Part shown: positions 542 to 33,580 of the stretch, in pieces
Layout: every line of letters begins with the position of its first letter
How positions within the stretch are numbered: position 1 is the first letter of the stretch
Source: Podarcis cretensis
Lineage: Eukaryota
DNA length: 64,000 nucleotides
Assembly: GCA_951804945.1 (NCBI GenBank)
Contig: OX638150.1
Span: 61,256,001-61,320,000 of the forward strand
Reading direction: 5' to 3'
Notes under the pieces: model-generated
What the model was told of the DNA's origin: nothing
Database searches by the model: none
The model's input: only the letters and a program-made list of their open reading frames with translations
Translations under genes and position numbers: made by a program

Positions 542-619
542 CTTGAGAGCTTCCAAGATTCTACCATCGTAGTCAATTACTACTGTATCACCCTGTTCTC
601 CTTTCAGGCCTGGAGGACC
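542..619 (-). CDS. COL23A1: COL23A1 exon, 78 nt, GPPGLKGEQGDTVVIDYDGRILEALK (end of COL1 plus NC2)
   Basis: tttctttgtag|GGT...AAG|gtaacc; diagnostic NC2 motif. Confidence 0.97.
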
Positions 620-1714: not shown

Positions 1715-1759
1715 CCTTGGCCCAATGTGTCCATCTGCTCCTCTTTCACCAGGTTCACC
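1715..1759 (-). CDS. COL23A1: COL23A1 exon, 45 nt, GEPGERGADGHIGPR
   Basis: tttcag|GGT...AGG|gtatg; corresponds to human GEPGHRGTDGAAGPR. Confidence 0.95.
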
Positions 1760-3858: not shown

Positions 3859-5173
3859 TTGGAAAAGGACTCGCAACTCTTGAAAATATTTCAGTTCTCT
3901 ATTTTCCTTGGGCTAATGTTATGCTGATCATGCGAAACAAAGATACTTATGCTATTTTACATTCCATCCTGTTTTCATGATACAGTATTTCAAAACTAAC
4001 CTATTTGCTTCTTCCTGTTACCAGAGCATATAAACATGCCATCTATGAAATAATGTCGTTTGCTGTAGGGACTTATAAAATTTGTACACTCCATTGTCAT
4101 TTCCTGTACTGGTAATCAAATTATTGAATTGCTATGCATTAAATTAATTAGCAGATTCAGGTTTGTGTGCGTGTGTGTTTTTTTTTTACTCTGCATGTCT
4201 TTATGTTAGAATGATTCTACATTTTTTTCCAAAAAAAATTAATGCAGTATTGTTTTTTATCCTATATTAGCAGAGAAAATGAATGTTCTATCTTAATTTG
4301 CCTTAATTTGGCAGTTTTTGTTATAATTTAATGATGCCTGTTGTGGAGGACAGAGCTCCATAAGTGCAGGATAAAACATTCAAAGAGCCAGGGTTTGAAG
4401 TCATTAGGTATGGGAAGTTGGATGTGCAGCACCAGAAGCCCTGCTAGCACACTAGCAATTTCTGATAGCTATGTGCCAATACCAGCCAAGGCTCATTCCA
4501 TCGCCATCCTCCCATGTGGAAATCCAAGTGCATACAGCTCTTTAAACCACACTAGCTGCCCTGCTTTTCAGCATTCGCCATCACATAGACAAAAGGGCTC
4601 AAGCTGTCTCACCAATTCAACATGAAACGGAATTTCGTGTGAACCTGGACCTCGCCATTTCACAGTAAGCATGCAAATACCCTGCTCTGCACCATTCATG
4701 TCTTGTGCGTGTTCCAAAAGTAAAGCATACATCGAGAATCATATGGAAAAGAAGAGGCTTGGGAGGGGAAGGAGTTACATAAGAAAAGAAGCAGTTGGGG
4801 AGCAGATTAAGCAGGACCCTCCCAACACCTCTCTGATCCAAAATTGTCATCTTCCTCAAACAAAAATGACCACTTGTGTTTTGATGCATACATTTGATTA
4901 CCATGTTTCATTTTGCTCTCCGTTACCAAGCAGGGTTAATACTAGTCTTGGGCTATGATCCAAGGGAAGTCTTCTATATGTGTAATTTTTCAGCTACAAA
5001 AATTTTCTTCAAATGTCTGATAAGCTGCTCCTGAATGTTGGAGAGCATGGCAGTGAAACATCCCATTAGATGTGAGGGGATGCTGCTGTAAATGCAAGTT
5101 GCAATTTCATTGCAAATGAAGCATTTTGCATGTTCGTATCCAGACCTTACTATCCTTCCCATTTGATACTTAC

Positions 5174-5236
5174 CTTTGGCCCTGGTAGACCATTTATTCC
5201 ATTCACTCCTATTGGGCCAACACTTCCTGGTTCTCC
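5174..5236 (-). CDS. COL23A1: Array exon copy 20, GEPGSVGPIGVNGINGLPGPK
   Basis: 63 nt, cag/gtaagt; followed by the 3.4-kb intron. Confidence 0.85.
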
Positions 5237-5327
5237 CTGTAATGTTTGAAGGAGGTGCAATGGAAAACTCTCAGTTTCTAAGCAGGCCAGGTGCTAGTCT
5301 CACTATCCTTTCCAATGTGATACTTAC

Positions 5328-5390
5328 CTTTGGCCCTGGAAGGCCATCTGTACCTTTCTCTCCTGTTGGGCCAACACTTCCTGGGTCTCC
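5328..5390 (-). CDS. COL23A1: Array exon copy 19, GDPGSVGPTGEKGTDGLPGPK
   Basis: 63 nt, cag/gtaagt. Confidence 0.82.
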
Positions 5391-5481
5391 CTGTAATGTT
5401 TGAGAGAGGTGCAATGGAAAACTCTCAGTTTCTAAGCAGGCCAGGTGCTAGTCTTACTATTCTTTCCCACGCGCCACTTAC

Positions 5482-5544
5482 CTTTGGCCCTGGTAGACCA
5501 TCTATGCCTTTGTCTCCTGTCGGGCCAGGGCTTCCGGGTTCTCC
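5482..5544 (-). CDS. COL23A1: Array exon copy 18, GEPGSPGPTGDKGIDGLPGPK
   Basis: 63 nt, cag/gtaagt. Confidence 0.82.
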
Positions 5545-5810
5545 CTGAAATGTTTGAAAGAGGTGCAATGGAAAACTTCCAGGGCTGGATCCAGATTCTG
5601 CTAGCAGAAGCCCACACAAGGCATTCTACTAGCACAATTTCCTTCCCTCTCCTCCCCCTGTGCCCTGTCATTGGCTGGAGTGGGTGGGAGAACCCCCAGA
5701 TCAGTGGGGGCAGGGTAGGAGAGGAGAGATTGTTTTGTTAAGCAAGCAGATATGCTTGCATTGATATGAGTGATGCCTAACCTCACTATCCTTTTCCATA
5801 TGCTGCTTAC

Positions 5811-5873
5811 CTTTGGCCCTGGTAGCCCATCAATGCATTTGTCTCCTACTGAGCCATTGCCTCCTGGTTCTCC
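5811..5873 (-). CDS. COL23A1: Array exon copy 17, GEPGGNGSVGDKCIDGLPGPK (Gly->Cys)
   Basis: 63 nt, cag/gtaagc; TGC at a Gly position (5835-5837). Confidence 0.7.
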
Positions 5874-5962
5874 CTGTAATATTTGAAAGAGGTGCAATGG
5901 AAAATGCAGTTTCTAATCAGGGCATGCGCTAATCTTACTATCCTTTCCCATGCGCTGCTTAC

Positions 5963-6025
5963 CTTTGGCCCTGGTAGACCATCTATGCCTTTCTCTCCTA
6001 TTGGACCAGGGCTTCCTGGTTCACC
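5963..6025 (-). CDS. COL23A1: Array exon copy 16, GEPGSPGPIGEKGIDGLPGPK
   Basis: 63 nt, cag/gtaagc. Confidence 0.82.
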
Positions 6026-6517
6026 CTGCAATGTTTGAAAGAGGTGAAATGGAAAAGTCTCATTTTTTAAGCAGGGCAATAAGACCAGTACAAGCAGCTG
6101 GACATCTGGGAGGCTGGGTAAGAAGACTCACCACCACTGCCCTCCTCAGCACTGCCCTCTGTTTCTGTCAGCCTCTTCTGGAGGACAGATGAGGAAGCCA
6201 GATGTGAAGCATCTAGTTAAAAGACCATTATTCTGCTGTACTGTATTTATTGTCTGTTAACTTTCATTTTGTTCTGTACTTAGGCGTTAGGTCTAGAGTA
6301 TATTTTTGTAATATTGAAGACAGTATATTCTATGTTTCTTGCTGAATTGTTGTTGTGTTTACAAAACTGCCTTCTCCCCAATCAATGTTTTGCAGTTTAA
6401 TAGGAAAAGGGGACATTGTTGTAAGCTGCTTTAGGAACAGCTCACTGTGCAAAGGTGCCATATACATAAACTTAAATGAACTAAACAATCTGACAATCTT
6501 TCCCGTGCTCTGCTTAC

Positions 6518-6580
6518 CTTCGGCCCTGCTAGACCATCTAAGCCTTTCTCTCCCGCTGGGCCAATGCTTCCAGGTTCTCC
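6518..6580 (-). CDS. COL23A1: Array exon copy 15, GEPGSIGPAGEKGLDGLAGPK
   Basis: 63 nt, tag/gtaagc. Confidence 0.8.
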
Positions 6581-6671
6581 CTATGATGTTTGAAAGAGAT
6601 GCAGTGGAAAACTCTCAGTTGGTAAGCAGGGCATATGCTAATCTTAGCATTCTTCTCCATGCACTGCTTAC

Positions 6672-6734
6672 CTTAGGCCCTGGTAGCCCATCTATGCCTC
6701 TCTCTCCCACTGAGCCAGCGCTTCCTCGTTTTCC
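6672..6734 (-). CDS. COL23A1: Array exon copy 14, GKRGSAGSVGERGIDGLPGPK
   Basis: 63 nt, cag/gtaagc. Confidence 0.8.
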
Positions 6735-6821
6735 CTGTGGTGTTTAAGGAAGGGCAATGGAACTCTCAGTTTCTGAGCAGGTATCATCAAGTCTTAGTAT
6801 ATTTTCTGATGTGCTGCTTAC

Positions 6822-6884
6822 CCTTGCTCCTGGTTGCCCTTTTATGCCTTTTTCCCCAGTCTGACCAATGCTTCCTGGATTTCC
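6822..6884 (-). CDS. COL23A1: Array exon copy 13, GNPGSIGQTGEKGIKGQPGAR
   Basis: 63 nt, cag/gtaagc; strongly diverged but all 7 Gly kept. Confidence 0.8.
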
Positions 6885-6976
6885 CTGTAGTGTTTGAAAG
6901 AGGTGCAATGGAAGACTTTAAGTTTTCAAGCAGGGCATGTGCTAAATCTTAGCCGTCATTCCCATGCACTGCTTAC

Positions 6977-7039
6977 CTTTGGCCCTGGTAGCCCATCCAT
7001 GCCTCTCTCCCCTGTTGGGCCAATGCTTCCCCGGTTTCC
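6977..7039 (-). CDS. COL23A1: Array exon copy 12, GNRGSIGPTGERGMDGLPGPK
   Basis: 63 nt, cag/gtaagc. Confidence 0.8.
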
Positions 7040-7133
7040 CTGTAAATTTTGAAAGAGGGAGAATGGAAAACTCTTGGTTTCTTAGCAGGCTATGTGCTTA
7101 GGATCTTGTTATCCTTTCCCATGTAATACCCAC

Positions 7134-7196
7134 CTTTGGCCCTGGTAGACCACTCATGCCTCTTTTTCCCACAGGGCCAATGTTTCCTGGTTCTCC
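7134..7196 (-). CDS. COL23A1: Array exon copy 11, GEPGNIGPVGKRGMSGLPGPK
   Basis: 63 nt, cag/gtgggt (the only donor in the array that is not GTAAG). Confidence 0.78.
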
Positions 7197-7287
7197 CTGT
7201 ATTATTTGAAAGAGGTGCAATAGGAAACTCTAAGTTTCTAAGCATGGATTGTGCTAATCTTAGCATTCTTTCCCATGCACTGCTTAC

Positions 7288-7350
7288 CTTTGCCCCTGGT
7301 AGACCATCTATGCCTCTCTCCCCTACTGGGCCAGGACTTCCTGCTTCTCC
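7288..7350 (-). CDS. COL23A1: Array exon copy 10, GEAGSPGPVGERGIDGLPGAK
   Basis: 63 nt, tag/gtaagc. Confidence 0.8.
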
Positions 7351-7439
7351 CTATAGTGTTTTTAAAAAGGTGCAATGGAAAACTCTGTTTCTTAACAAGA
7401 CATGTGCTAGTCTTTTATCAACTCCCATGTGCTCCTTAC

Positions 7440-7502
7440 CACTGGCCCTGGTAGACCATCTATGCCTCTTTCCCCTACTGGGCCAGGACTTCCTGCTTCT
7501 CC
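7440..7502 (-). CDS. COL23A1: Array exon copy 9, GEAGSPGPVGERGIDGLPGPV
   Basis: 63 nt, cag/gtaagg. Confidence 0.8.
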
Positions 7503-7593
7503 CTGTAGTGTTTAAAAGAGGTGCAATGGACAACTCTCAGTTGCTCACCAAGGAAAGTGCTAGCCTTTTTATCCTTTCTCATGCACTGCTTAC

Positions 7594-7656
7594 CTTTGGC
7601 CCTGGTAGACCATCTATGCCTCTCTCCCCTACTGGGCCAGGACTTCCTGCTTCTCC
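7594..7656 (-). CDS. COL23A1: Array exon copy 8, GEAGSPGPVGERGIDGLPGPK
   Basis: 63 nt, tag/gtaagc; identical to copy 7. Confidence 0.8.
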
Positions 7657-7748
7657 CTATAGTGTTTTTAAAAAGGTGCAATGGACAACTCTCAGTTGCT
7701 CACCAAGGAAAGTGCTAGCCTTTTTATCCTTTCTCATGCACTGCTTAC

Positions 7749-7811
7749 CTTTGGCCCTGGTAGACCATCTATGCCTCTCTCCCCTACTGGGCCAGGACTT
7801 CCTGCTTCTCC
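7749..7811 (-). CDS. COL23A1: Array exon copy 7, GEAGSPGPVGERGIDGLPGPK
   Basis: 63 nt, cag/gtaagc. Confidence 0.8.
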
Positions 7812-7903
7812 CTGTAGTGTTTTAAGAAGGTGCAATGGAAAACTCTCAGTTTCTCACCAAGGCAAGCACTAGCTATTTTTATTCTTTCCCATGCACTGCT
7901 TAC

Positions 7904-7966
7904 CTTTGGCCCTGGAAGACCATCTATTCCTTTGTCTCCCATTGGGCCGACACTTCCTGGTTCTCC
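7904..7966 (-). CDS. COL23A1: Array exon copy 6, GEPGSVGPMGDKGIDGLPGPK
   Basis: 63 nt, cag/gtaagc. Confidence 0.82.
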
Positions 7967-8056
7967 CTGGAGTGTTTATAAGAGGTGCAATGGAAAATTT
8001 TCAGTTTCTGAACAAGACATGTGCTAGTCTTTTATCCATTCCCATGTGTTCCTTAC

Positions 8057-8119
8057 CTTTGGCCCTGGAAGACCATCTATTCCTTTGTCTCCCATTGGGC
8101 CAACGCTTCCTTGTTTTCC
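8057..8119 (-). CDS. COL23A1: Array exon copy 5, GKQGSVGPMGDKGIDGLPGPK
   Basis: 63 nt, cag/gtaagg. Confidence 0.82.
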
Positions 8120-8209
8120 CTGTAGCATTCAAAAGAAGTGCAAAGAACACACTCATTTTCTAAGAAGGGTGTTCATCAGTTTTACTGTACCATTCAAGAA
8201 GATGCTTAC

Positions 8210-8272
8210 CTTTGGCCCTGGTAGACCATCTATTCCTTTTTCTCCCATTGGGCCAACACTTCCTGGTTCTCC
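8210..8272 (-). CDS. COL23A1: Array exon copy 4, GEPGSVGPMGEKGIDGLPGPK
   Basis: 63 nt, cag/gtaagc. Confidence 0.82.
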
Positions 8273-8363
8273 CTGTAATGTTTGAAAGAGGTGCAGTGGA
8301 AAACTCTCTGCTTTTAAGCAGGCCAGGTGCTAGTCTTACTATTCTTTCCCATGCACCACTTAC

Positions 8364-8426
8364 CTTTGGCCCTGGTAGACCATCTATGCCTTTGTCTCCC
8401 ATTGGGCCAGGGCTTCCAGGTTCTCC
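8364..8426 (-). CDS. COL23A1: Array exon copy 3, GEPGSPGPMGDKGIDGLPGPK
   Basis: 63 nt, cag/gtaagt. Confidence 0.82.
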
Positions 8427-8517
8427 CTGTAGTGTTTAAAAAAGGTGGAGTGGAAAACTCTTAGTTTTTGAGCAAGGCAAGTGCCAGTCTTTTTATGCTT
8501 TCCCATGCGCTGCTTAC

Positions 8518-8580
8518 CTTTGGCCCTGGTTTACCGTCTATGCCTTTGTCTCCCATTGGGCCAACGCTTCCTTGTTTTCC
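8518..8580 (-). CDS. COL23A1: Array exon copy 2, GKQGSVGPMGDKGIDGKPGPK
   Basis: 63 nt, cag/gtaag, intact Gly-X-Y. Confidence 0.82.
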
Positions 8581-8670
8581 CTGTAGCGTTCAAAAGAAGT
8601 GCAAAGAACACTCTCATTTTCTAAGAAGGGTGTTCATCAGTTTTACTGTACCATTCAAGAAGATGCTTAC

Positions 8671-8733
8671 CTTTGGCCCTGGTAGTCCTTCATTGCCCTT
8701 CTCACCTATGGGCCCAATACTTCCTTGTTCTCC
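8671..8733 (-). CDS. COL23A1: Array exon copy 1, GEQGSIGPIGEKGNEGLPGPK
   Basis: 63 nt, attaatctcag|...|gtaagc; its upstream acceptor is not of the repeat type. Confidence 0.92.
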
Positions 8734-9103: not shown

Positions 9104-9148
9104 CTTTGGCCCTTGAATCCCTGGTTCTCCTGGGATTCCAGCATCACC
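9104..9148 (-). CDS. COL23A1: COL23A1 exon, 45 nt, GDAGIPGEPGIQGPK
   Basis: catcag|GGT...AAG|gtaaac; corresponds to human GDDGTPSQPGPPGPK. Confidence 0.93.
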
Positions 9149-10296: not shown

Positions 10297-10323
10297 TTTT
10301 CCTCCTGGAATACCAGGCTCACC
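10297..10323 (-). CDS. COL23A1: COL23A1 exon, 27 nt, GEPGIPGGK
   Basis: tttgttttgaag|GGT...AAA|gtaagt; human GEPGVPGKK. Confidence 0.92.
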
Positions 10324-12038: not shown

Positions 12039-12074
12039 CATGATACCAGCTTCTCCAGGTTCTCCTTTCTCACC
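12039..12074 (-). CDS. COL23A1: COL23A1 exon, 36 nt, GEKGEPGEAGIM
   Basis: ttctttag|GGT...ATG|gttagt; human GPKGEPGQDGEM. Confidence 0.92.
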
Positions 12075-12957: not shown

Positions 12958-13074
12958 AGGAAGGCCTGGGGGTCCCCTTGGGCCATCTTTTCCCGTGTCT
13001 CCAGGGGGCCCTCTTGCACCCGGCTGTCCAGGAGGACCTGGTGGACCAGCAGCGCCATCATTACCTTGATCCCC
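12958..13074 (-). CDS. COL23A1: COL23A1 exon, 117 nt, [39 protein letters not shown]
   Basis: cttatag|GGG...CCT|gtaagg; very close to the human segment. Confidence 0.97.
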
Positions 13075-16330: not shown

Positions 16331-16399
16331 CTTAAGGATACGTCGGCTAAAAATAGGCTGGTCAGAGAGAAATCCATGACTGAGGCGAGGGAAAGCCAT
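16331..16399 (-). CDS. COL23A1: Non-collagenous, probably alternative exon, 69 nt, MAFPRLSHGFLSDQPIFSRRILK
   Basis: Pyrimidine tract ...ttgactag|ATG...AAG|gtagaa; phase 0-0; strong similarity to the recalled COL25A1 segment MVFPKINHGFLSADQQLIKRRLIK at the equivalent position. Confidence 0.85.
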
Positions 16400-32599: not shown

Positions 32600-33580
32600 T
32601 GTTATGAGTTCAAGGGTGCCAGACTCCCTTAAATTCCTGCACCCAGTAAGTGTTAGAATTTAATCAAGCCTCCTGAATTCTTGGATCCAGCAGGGGGTTA
32701 AAATATAAGCCAAGCTAGCTTCCCCATGGGGTAATCACCTGACCAACGGGCAATTAAGAGAACAAAGGGGAGGTGATGAGCCATTAAGGAACCAAGGAAA
32801 AGGGGCTCTGTGCCAGACAGCAAGTGGGCGGTGCCCCTCCTCCTTCTCTTAGTTAGACAAAGCAGGAGTTTGGAGGACAGAGTTGGCTGTGATGTGAACT
32901 AGAGGAAGAAGATGCAGGCTGGAAAGGCTGAGAAAAAGCCATGGCTGATTTTCTGCTTGAATCTAAGACTGCGGCTATGGGAGAAACAAGACCCTTTGGG
33001 GTGTTAATGCTGTGAACCCCTCCATCATAGCCTCAGGTTGTATATATTTGCAAATAAACCAACTATCATAAAGAAGGCTGATCGCCGAAGAATTGATGCT
33101 TTTGAATTATGGTGCTGGAGGAGACTCTTGAGAGTCCCATGGACTGCAAGAAGATCAAACCGATCCATTCTTAAGGAAATCAGCCCTGAGTGCTCACTGG
33201 AAGAACAGATCCTGAAGCTGAGGCTCCAATACTTTGGCCACCTCATGAGAAGAGAAGACTCCCTGGAAAAGAGCCTGATGTTGGGAAAGATTGAGGGCAC
33301 AAGAAGAAGGGGACGGCAGAGGACGAGATGGTTGGATAGTGTTCTCGAAGCTACCAGCATGAGTTTGACCAAACTGCGGGAGGCAGTGGAAGACAGAAGG
33401 GCCTGGCGTGCTCTGGTCCATGGGGTCACGAAGAGTCGGACACGACTAAACGACTAAACAACAACAAATCATAAGGACACCACGGTCTTTGTGCCTCATT
33501 GCTGAAAGGAAACATGGACTCTCGGTGAGTGCCTGGAACCCCTGGAATCTCGTATTGCTCAGAGATTGGAGTGGCATGCT
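32600..33580 (+). mobile_element. Probable solo LTR interrupted by a Bov-B fragment
   Basis: Starts TGTTATG, has AATAAA just before the insertion, and appears to resume after it; boundaries uncertain. Confidence 0.4.
33068..33467 (+). mobile_element. 5'-truncated Bov-B (RTE) LINE
   Basis: Open frame IKKADRRRIDAFELWCWRRLLRVPWTARRSN...HGVTKSRTRLND typical of the Bov-B C-terminus; (CAA)n tail. Confidence 0.92.

Follow-up and report, generated by a model that had tools for sequence, protein, structure and literature searches.

Background

In the classical model, collagen genes grew by tandem duplication of an exon encoding Gly-X-Y triplets (Gly, glycine), with a unit of 54 base pairs in the fibrillar collagens. 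Here we describe a tandem array of 20 such exons, E1 to E20, in Podarcis cretensis. The array lies on the minus strand of a 64,000-nucleotide (nt) stretch of contig OX638150.1 (positions 61,256,001 to 61,320,000; hereafter the window), within a gene identified below as the orthologue of COL23A1, which encodes collagen XXIII. As in the classical model, a triple-helix domain is lengthened by exon duplication and the exons open with a complete Gly codon. However, the classical growth is ancient and its introns can no longer be aligned, whereas the introns of the array are still homologous. The analysis indicates that the copies are probably functional coding exons, maintained by selection and alternatively included.

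Expressed tandem arrays of exon-intron units are known from other genes, among them the PEVK exons of titin, the super-repeat exons of nebulin, and kringle IV-2 of LPA. Like the array in the window, these consist of a head-to-tail unit of one or more exons plus intron, their exons are frame-symmetric, and both copy number and splicing alter the length of the protein, but the protein fold and the gene are different. In addition, the LPA copies hardly differ from one another and are polymorphic, while the copies described here are old and diverged. Clusters of the Dscam type also contain tandem paralogous exons that are used alternatively, but those exons are mutually exclusive, whereas several copies of the array can occur in one contig. 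In the MACIT collagens, such as collagen XIII and C. elegans col-99, complex exon skipping is a common family feature, and the alternative splicing of collagen XXIII has been described as not adequately documented (PMC4678570). In-frame collagenous exons are omitted in many combinations in collagen XIII and col-99, as they are in the array, but the skipped exons in those genes are unique and ancient, while the array exons are paralogous copies of one exon. Nothing on lizard collagen XXIII was found in a literature search.

Structure of the array

A scan of the reverse complement found exactly 20 AG-63 nt-GT units with Gly at each third codon. Every exon encodes seven Gly-X-Y triplets without a stop, the first codon being GGN and the last a complete Y codon. 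Since all units are in phase 0 and hold seven triplets, any subset of them preserves the reading frame and the triplet register. The donor is GTAAG in all units except E11, where it is GTGGGT. Gly codons are retained at 139 of the 140 positions (58 GGA, 32 GGC, 30 GGG, and 19 GGT), and the single loss is at codon 13 of E17, which is TGC, encoding cysteine (Cys).

Internal introns 1 to 10 are 90, 91, 91, 90, 90, 92, 92, 91, 89, and 91 nt in length, and introns 11 to 19 are 94, 92, 87, 91, 492, 89, 266, 91, and 91 nt. Thus, 17 of the 19 are uninserted, at 87-94 nt, and the exceptions are introns 15 and 17, whose insertions had no second copy anywhere in the window when searched with blastn. Tandem Repeats Finder reported a period of 154 nt with 78-87% matches, together with higher-order periods of 306 and 461 nt. 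When one unit was compared to the whole window with blastn, the 20 copies were the only matches and no decayed pseudo-exons were found; there are no N letters in the window.

An earlier reading of this DNA, made from the sequence only, had arrived at the same anatomy. The 20 exons of 63 nt without stop or indel were recovered in a letter-for-letter rescan, as were the 17 uninserted introns in length classes of 87, 89, 90, 91, 92, and 94 nt, and the unit scan returned the 20 intact AG and 20 intact GT dinucleotides, the 19 GTAAG donors, and the 139 Gly codons with all four third letters in use. The sequence quoted in that reading for copy 13 (GNPGSIGQTGEKGIKGQPGAR), as an example of changed X and Y residues, was also correct.

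Selection on the copies

The introns of the 20 units were aligned, separate maximum likelihood trees were inferred for the introns only and for complete units, and the minimum number of changes in each column was determined by the Fitch method. Changes are reported for the intron-only tree, which is the conservative choice as it is optimized for the introns. Positions 1 and 2 of the Gly codons had a single change compared to 32.5 expected from the intron middle (ratio 0.03, binomial P 4e-12), while position 3 of the Gly codons had 20 changes compared to 16.3 expected (ratio 1.23). For the X and Y codons, there were 65 changes at positions 1 and 2 (65.0 expected; ratio 1.00, and 0.78 on the whole-unit tree) and 46 changes at position 3 (32.5 expected; ratio 1.41). 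The splice sites were conserved, with 4 changes at donor positions +1 to +6 (13.9 expected; ratio 0.29) and none in the acceptor AG (4.6 expected; ratio 0).

Tree-free measures gave the same picture. Nucleotide diversity was 0.30 in the intron middle; within Gly codons it was 0.007 for positions 1 and 2 and 0.27 for position 3. Only 1 of the 14 columns at Gly positions 1 and 2 was variable, versus 58 of the 65 columns in the intron middle (Fisher P 4e-9). The ratio of nonsynonymous to synonymous substitution (dN/dS) by the Nei-Gojobori method (NG86) was 0.54 over all codons, with values of 0.02 in Gly codons and 0.79 in X/Y codons. The dS of the exons was 0.35, near the mean Jukes-Cantor distance between the introns of different copies (0.385 substitutions per site). 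Changes private to a single copy represent the most recent history of the array, and among these there was 1 at Gly positions 1 and 2 compared to approximately 7 expected (P 0.009). Base composition is not the cause of the Gly conservation, because intron columns with a consensus G had 3.3 changes per column, which is above the intron average; there were 16 changes in the five intron GG columns, which differ from the Gly columns with P 7e-9.

Neutral evolution was simulated in 5000 runs, using Hasegawa-Kishino-Yano parameters from the introns and the midpoint-rooted intron tree. The simulated arrays lost a mean of 57 of 133 Gly codons, and never fewer than 25, whereas 1 loss was observed. The mean number of splice dinucleotides lost was 14.6, compared to none observed (P(0) = 2e-4), and the mean number of copies with a stop was 5.05, again compared to none (P(0) = 0.03). 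Fully intact copies numbered 18 of 19 in the array, while the simulations gave a mean of 0.24 and a maximum of 6. In addition, the intron alignment requires about 11-15 indel events, and there were none in the exons (P 2e-3 to 3e-4).

Conservation was not limited to the Gly codons and splice dinucleotides. Third positions in the middle of the exon had a diversity of 0.38, compared to 0.19 for the first four codons and 0.07 for the last four. The synonymous sites at the exon ends, donor positions +3 to +5, and the 3' end of the intron were all conserved, which indicates that efficient exon recognition is itself under selection. The constraint is nevertheless narrow, applying almost only to Gly, frame, stops, splice sites, and exon ends, while X and Y residues are almost free to drift. 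The purifying selection that the sequence-only reading had proposed therefore withstands correction for duplication, in that Gly positions 1 and 2 and the splice dinucleotides remain far more conserved than intron sites.

Splicing of the copies in RNA

Contigs from four sequencing runs were compared with the window. Runs X1 and X2 are from organism A, which is about 2.7% diverged from the window, and run X5 is from organism B, which is at least 99% identical to it. Run X23, a DNA run of organism G, was used as a control. In X1, X2, and X5 there were at least 12 distinct joints exactly at predicted exon borders, with CT..AC on the plus strand, equivalent to GT..AG on the gene strand, and no such splice joints were found among the contigs listed for the control run X23.

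In X5, the E1-E2 and E2-E3 joints were present in the same contig as the constitutive exon immediately upstream of the array. Further joints between consecutive exons were E3-E4, E10-E11, E11-E12, E12-E13, E13-E14, and E14-E15, and the E11-E12 joint makes use of the aberrant GTGGGT donor. Unique flanking sequence makes the assignment of E1, E2, E3, E11, E12, E13, E14, E16, and E17 unambiguous. Copies were also skipped: X1 contained an E13-E16 joint, while X2, from the same sample, contained E13-E14-E15, and X5 contained an E3-E17 joint in which the 37-nt side was exact to E3 and had 2 mismatches to E16. The deepest contig from organism B continues into the array. Contig depth is a poor measure, and therefore the level of inclusion can be described only qualitatively. 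A mutually exclusive exon cluster, with one copy per messenger RNA (mRNA), was considered and is ruled out by single contigs holding E1-E2-E3 and E11-E12-E13 in series.

These joints, together with the selection described above, bear out the earlier statement that the copies are not neutral satellite DNA. The statement that most copies are translated held with respect to splicing, but it was too broad in that copies are alternatively skipped, in one species apparently for the most part, and are not present in every transcript; we infer their translation.

Two other contigs were observed in these runs. In X2, the sequence following E2 at 8517 continues with 27 Gly-X-Y-like letters that have no match longer than 12 nt in the window, and the sister species may carry another copy there, or a shorter form of the exon. 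In X5, a contig with a depth of 9 covers 4000-4106, whereas the remainder of this long intron, which follows E20, has no contig; the covered part could belong to a repeat or to an exon that is not annotated.

Identity of the host gene

Five consecutive exon-encoded blocks in the window matched the human collagen XXIII row (HsXXIII) of a published alignment (PMC4678570, Additional file 1; the alignment file was machine-read, with small errors). The series in the window is GEPGIPGGK, GDAGIPGEPGIQGPK, the array, GEPGERGADGHIGPR, and GPPGLKGEQGDTVVIDYDGRILEALK, and the order in human collagen XXIII is GEPGVPGKK, GDDGTPSQPGPPGPK, GEPGSMGPRGENGVDGAPGPK, GEPGHRGTDGAAGPR, and GAPGLKGEQGD.VVIDYDGRILDAL. 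The order common to both is GEPG.PG.K, a 15-residue block, a 21-residue block, GEPG.RG.DG..GPR, and G.PGLKGEQGDTVVIDYDGRIL.ALK. At the position of the 20 exon copies, human collagen XXIII has one 21-residue block (GEPGSMGPRGENGVDGAPGPK). The non-collagenous motif that follows the first collagenous domain is VVIDYDGRILEALK in the window, VVIDYDGRILDAL in human collagen XXIII, EMVDYNGNINEAL in collagen XIII, and EIIDYNGNLHEAL in collagen XXV, and the VVIDYDGRIL motif is specific to collagen XXIII in the published alignment (PMC4678570). Judged by this block order and motif, which it has in common with human collagen XXIII, the host gene is the orthologue of COL23A1, encoding the transmembrane collagen XXIII of the MACIT family; human and mouse collagen XXIII are its closest known counterparts. 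Members of this family also have an N-terminal cytosolic and transmembrane domain, a furin site (type II orientation), and a conserved C-terminal peptide with two Cys, which in this minus-strand gene would be encoded past position 1 of the window, on the 3' side.

Exons were compared to the Pfam Collagen family (PF01391) singly, and not joined into a spliced model. The flanking exon of 39 amino acids (aa) scored 30.4 bits (cut-off 27.2). Five array exons, of 21 aa each, were tried singly: four of them scored 16.8-18.2 bits (E 0.002-0.006), as they are too short to reach the cut-off, and E17 had no match. A search of the 39-aa exon against 1.84 billion protein representatives returned generic long collagens and no gene name, with scores that sum over many stretches, and the only orthologous piece among the matches was a genomic fragment of 97 aa with 92% identity (P0148).

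There is also a candidate exon with AG/GT borders at 16331-16399 on the minus strand (MAFPRLSHGFLSDQPIFSRRILK). It resembles a non-collagenous segment of human collagen XXV (NHGFLSADQQLIKRRLIK), and the human collagen XXIII row of the published alignment has no counterpart of it.

The features of the array and of the surrounding gene are given in Table 1.

Table 1. Array, exons, and inserted introns of the collagen XXIII gene in the window
Feature	Coordinates	Strand	Encoded sequence	Remarks
117-nt exon (39 aa)	12958-13074	-		above the Pfam Collagen cut-off; matches human XXIII/XXV block
36-nt exon	12039-12074	-	GEKGEPGEAGIM	
27-nt exon	10297-10323	-	GEPGIPGGK	human counterpart GEPGVPGKK
Upstream unique exon, 45 nt	9104-9148	-	GDAGIPGEPGIQGPK	human XXIII counterpart GDDGTPSQPGPPGPK
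Whole array	5174-8733	-		20 units, each a 63-nt phase-0 exon and an intron of ~91 nt
E1	8671-8733	-	GEQGSIGPIGEKGNEGLPGPK	upstream intron unique; joined to 9104-9148 in X1, X2, and X5
E2	8518-8580	-	GKQGSVGPMGDKGIDGKPGPK	X5 joints E1-E2 and E2-E3, sides of 55-63 nt unique to these exons
E3	8364-8426	-	GEPGSPGPMGDKGIDGLPGPK	joints E2-E3, E3-E4, E3-E17
E4	8210-8272	-	GEPGSVGPMGEKGIDGLPGPK	X2 joint E3-E4, short side also fitting other exons
E5	8057-8119	-	GKQGSVGPMGDKGIDGLPGPK	close to E2; covered by RNA contigs
E6	7904-7966	-	GEPGSVGPMGDKGIDGLPGPK	X5 contigs 7784-7928 and 7903-8081
E7	7749-7811	-	GEAGSPGPVGERGIDGLPGPK	same as E8; joint 7810-8056 fits E5-E7 or E6-E7
E8	7594-7656	-	GEAGSPGPVGERGIDGLPGPK	in youngest copy group
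E9	7440-7502	-	GEAGSPGPVGERGIDGLPGPV	last codon GTG, AAG/AGG in other copies
E10	7288-7350	-	GEAGSPGPVGERGIDGLPGAK	X2 joint E10-E11
E11	7134-7196	-	GEPGNIGPVGKRGMSGLPGPK	donor GTGGGT, yet used; X5 joint E11-E12, 63-nt side
E12	6977-7039	-	GNRGSIGPTGERGMDGLPGPK	joints E11-E12, E12-E13
E13	6822-6884	-	GNPGSIGQTGEKGIKGQPGAR	most diverged copy; joints E12-E13, E13-E14, E13-E16, both sides unique
E14	6672-6734	-	GKRGSAGSVGERGIDGLPGPK	X2 joint E13-E14
E15	6518-6580	-	GEPGSIGPAGEKGLDGLAGPK	X2 joint E14-E15, short side
Intron 15	6026-6517	-		insertion of ~400 nt
E16	5963-6025	-	GEPGSPGPIGEKGIDGLPGPK	X1 joint E13-E16
E17	5811-5873	-	GEPGGNGSVGDKCIDGLPGPK	only copy with a lost Gly; joint onto unique 5' start in X1, X2, and X5
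Intron 17	5545-5810	-		insertion of ~175 nt
E18	5482-5544	-	GEPGSPGPTGDKGIDGLPGPK	X5 depth in bin 5448-5628
E19	5328-5390	-	GDPGSVGPTGEKGTDGLPGPK	X5 contig 5327-5392 with zero mismatches, and joint onto E19 start
E20	5174-5236	-	GEPGSVGPIGVNGINGLPGPK	joined to exon 1715-1759 in X5 (loose end)
Downstream unique exon, 45 nt	1715-1759	-	GEPGERGADGHIGPR	human counterpart GEPGHRGTDGAAGPR
Exon at end of collagenous domain	542-619	-	GPPGLKGEQGDTVVIDYDGRILEALK	end of domain plus collagen XXIII-specific non-collagenous motif

Elsewhere in the window, an open reading frame of 139 aa is present on the plus strand at 33038-33457, and we take it to resemble the C-terminal end of a long interspersed nuclear element (LINE) protein of the BovB type.

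Age and history of the array

Contigs from organisms A and G, which are sister species at about 2-3% divergence, were collinear with the paralogue-specific sequence of the window, and therefore the array is older than the species split. The divergence between copies (~0.385 substitutions per site) is about tenfold higher than that between the species. Among the between-species differences listed, 6 were in exons, which is a small sample: 4 were synonymous third positions, 3 of these being Gly position 3, and the other 2 were X/Y replacements in E9, leaving none at Gly positions 1 and 2.

Some parts of the array are younger. E7 and E8 are identical, and the E8 unit shares 96.7% identity with the E9 unit. 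Introns 1 (8581-8670) and 4 (8120-8209), both on the minus strand, share 97.8% identity, and in their 5' halves they resemble none of the remaining introns. There are 4 differences between E2 and E5. The identity of the two introns and the closeness of E2 and E5 point to a recent internal duplication or conversion, which would fit the 461-nt period.

Interpretation of the array

The explanation that we propose is as follows. The array arose inside the COL23A1 orthologue by tandem amplification of a single 63-nt exon, located close to where the first collagenous domain ends on its C-terminal side. The AG/GT borders of the copies are used for splicing into mRNA, both between neighbouring copies and with skipping that varies. 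Long-term purifying selection has maintained what the triple helix and splicing need, which is Gly at every third residue, the frame, the absence of stops, and the splice sites, and it has acted on the exon ends and the 3' end of the intron as well. With full inclusion, the first collagenous domain, in the ectodomain, would gain 399 residues (19 x 21). Collagen has an established geometry of 0.286 nm per residue, by which 399 residues would correspond to approximately 114 nm. A Gly substitution in an included exon would disturb the trimer, as is known from collagen disorders, and because of this, selection could be strong even if inclusion is partial. The pattern of selection matches the needs of a helical spacer and no more. 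The lengthened chains would presumably form trimers, and the added length may be adaptive.

Several observations weigh against this interpretation. The deepest contig from organism A, found in X1 and X2, joins E1 directly to the downstream exon at 1715-1759, omitting E2 to E20 (beyond E1, a long loose end is identical to 1729-1758), and the array joints of organism A have depths similar to those of intronic contigs. Several joints have sides of 23-28 nt that match more than one copy. The assignment of X1, X2, and X5 as RNA is a guess, although the spliced joints show that they contain complementary DNA. E17, with its Gly to Cys replacement, is still included in RNA in all three runs; its Cys could be a tolerated interruption or a site for an interchain disulfide. 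Finally, the X/Y codons are near neutral, which suits a spacer but would equally suit a constraint against poisoning the trimer.

The alternative with the most weight is that E2 to E20 are mostly skipped cassettes without a useful role, which selection only keeps harmless. In that case, loss of Gly, a frameshift, or a stop would yield a collagen chain that is dominant-negative or prone to nonsense-mediated decay, and the direct link from E1 to 1715-1759 in the deepest X1/X2 contig, the X/Y dN/dS of 0.79, and the E13-E16 and E3-E17 skipping joints all speak for this reading. However, the X5 contig with the constitutive exon at 9104-9148 continues through E1-E2-E3, and E17 and E20 are joined in X5 as well. 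Mere harmlessness also does not account for the conservation of synonymous exon-end sites, donor positions +3 to +5, and the 3' end of the intron. Moreover, unequal exchange could easily have deleted an array that was only a liability, yet it is much older than the species split. We therefore regard harm avoidance as the sole role of selection as unlikely.

Far less probable is the possibility that the GG of the Gly codons is kept by concerted evolution, through gene conversion or unequal crossing-over, or by a constraint on the DNA or RNA such as purine-rich splicing enhancers, rather than by selection on the protein. The recent conversion or duplication suggested by introns 1 and 4 and by E2 and E5 shows that exchange of this kind may occur, and the quiet synonymous sites near the exon ends are compatible with a constraint at the nucleic acid level. 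But homogenization cannot hold positions 1 and 2 of the Gly codons while their third positions go on changing as fast as the introns, and a period of 9 in which third positions are unconstrained is the mark of a requirement for Gly.

The codon-position pattern excludes concerted evolution and, with it, the least probable explanation of all, a neutral exon-like minisatellite or pseudo-exon array that is intact merely through recent duplication of one good exon, which the few young copies (E7 to E9) might suggest but which is refuted by the mean intron distance of 0.385, the unequal substitution and indel rates across the unit, the contrast in variable columns, the simulated Gly losses, and the presence of spliced copies in RNA.

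If the copies are, as we conclude, functional and alternatively included exons, the array may be a splice-tunable ruler, by which tissues or species adjust how far a cell-surface collagen extends, within a span of about 114 nm, through the number of interchangeable 21-residue cassettes that they include, from 1 (E1) to 20, and in which pairing of an inverted repeat between introns, looping out blocks of exons, is part of the mechanism of choice. We offer this tentatively, as a possibility that is more likely wrong than right. The inverted repeat, GTGCATGGGAAAG ... TTTTCCATTGCAC, is found in each short intron of the array (5237-8670, minus strand), with its arms at +8 to +19 and -32 to -20. The arms pair in 80% of cells, compared to 36-58% when the partner is slid, and covariation is weak. 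RNAalifold predicted no consensus structure for 17 introns. The repeat could bridge the splice sites of one intron, or it could pair between introns and loop out the exons.

Conclusions

The growth of collagen genes by exon duplication in the classical model left traces that have since been erased, but in this gene 20 copies keep introns that can be aligned, and therefore selection on a triple-helix exon can be measured directly. Selection on such an exon conserves Gly, the frame, and the splice signals almost absolutely and places hardly any demand on the X and Y residues. For a conserved transmembrane collagen that has about 540 residues in human, the array also indicates that as many as 399 residues can be gained within a single lineage, and there is evidence that their inclusion varies. 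This locus is thus a natural system for investigating how the length of the helix matters in a membrane collagen.

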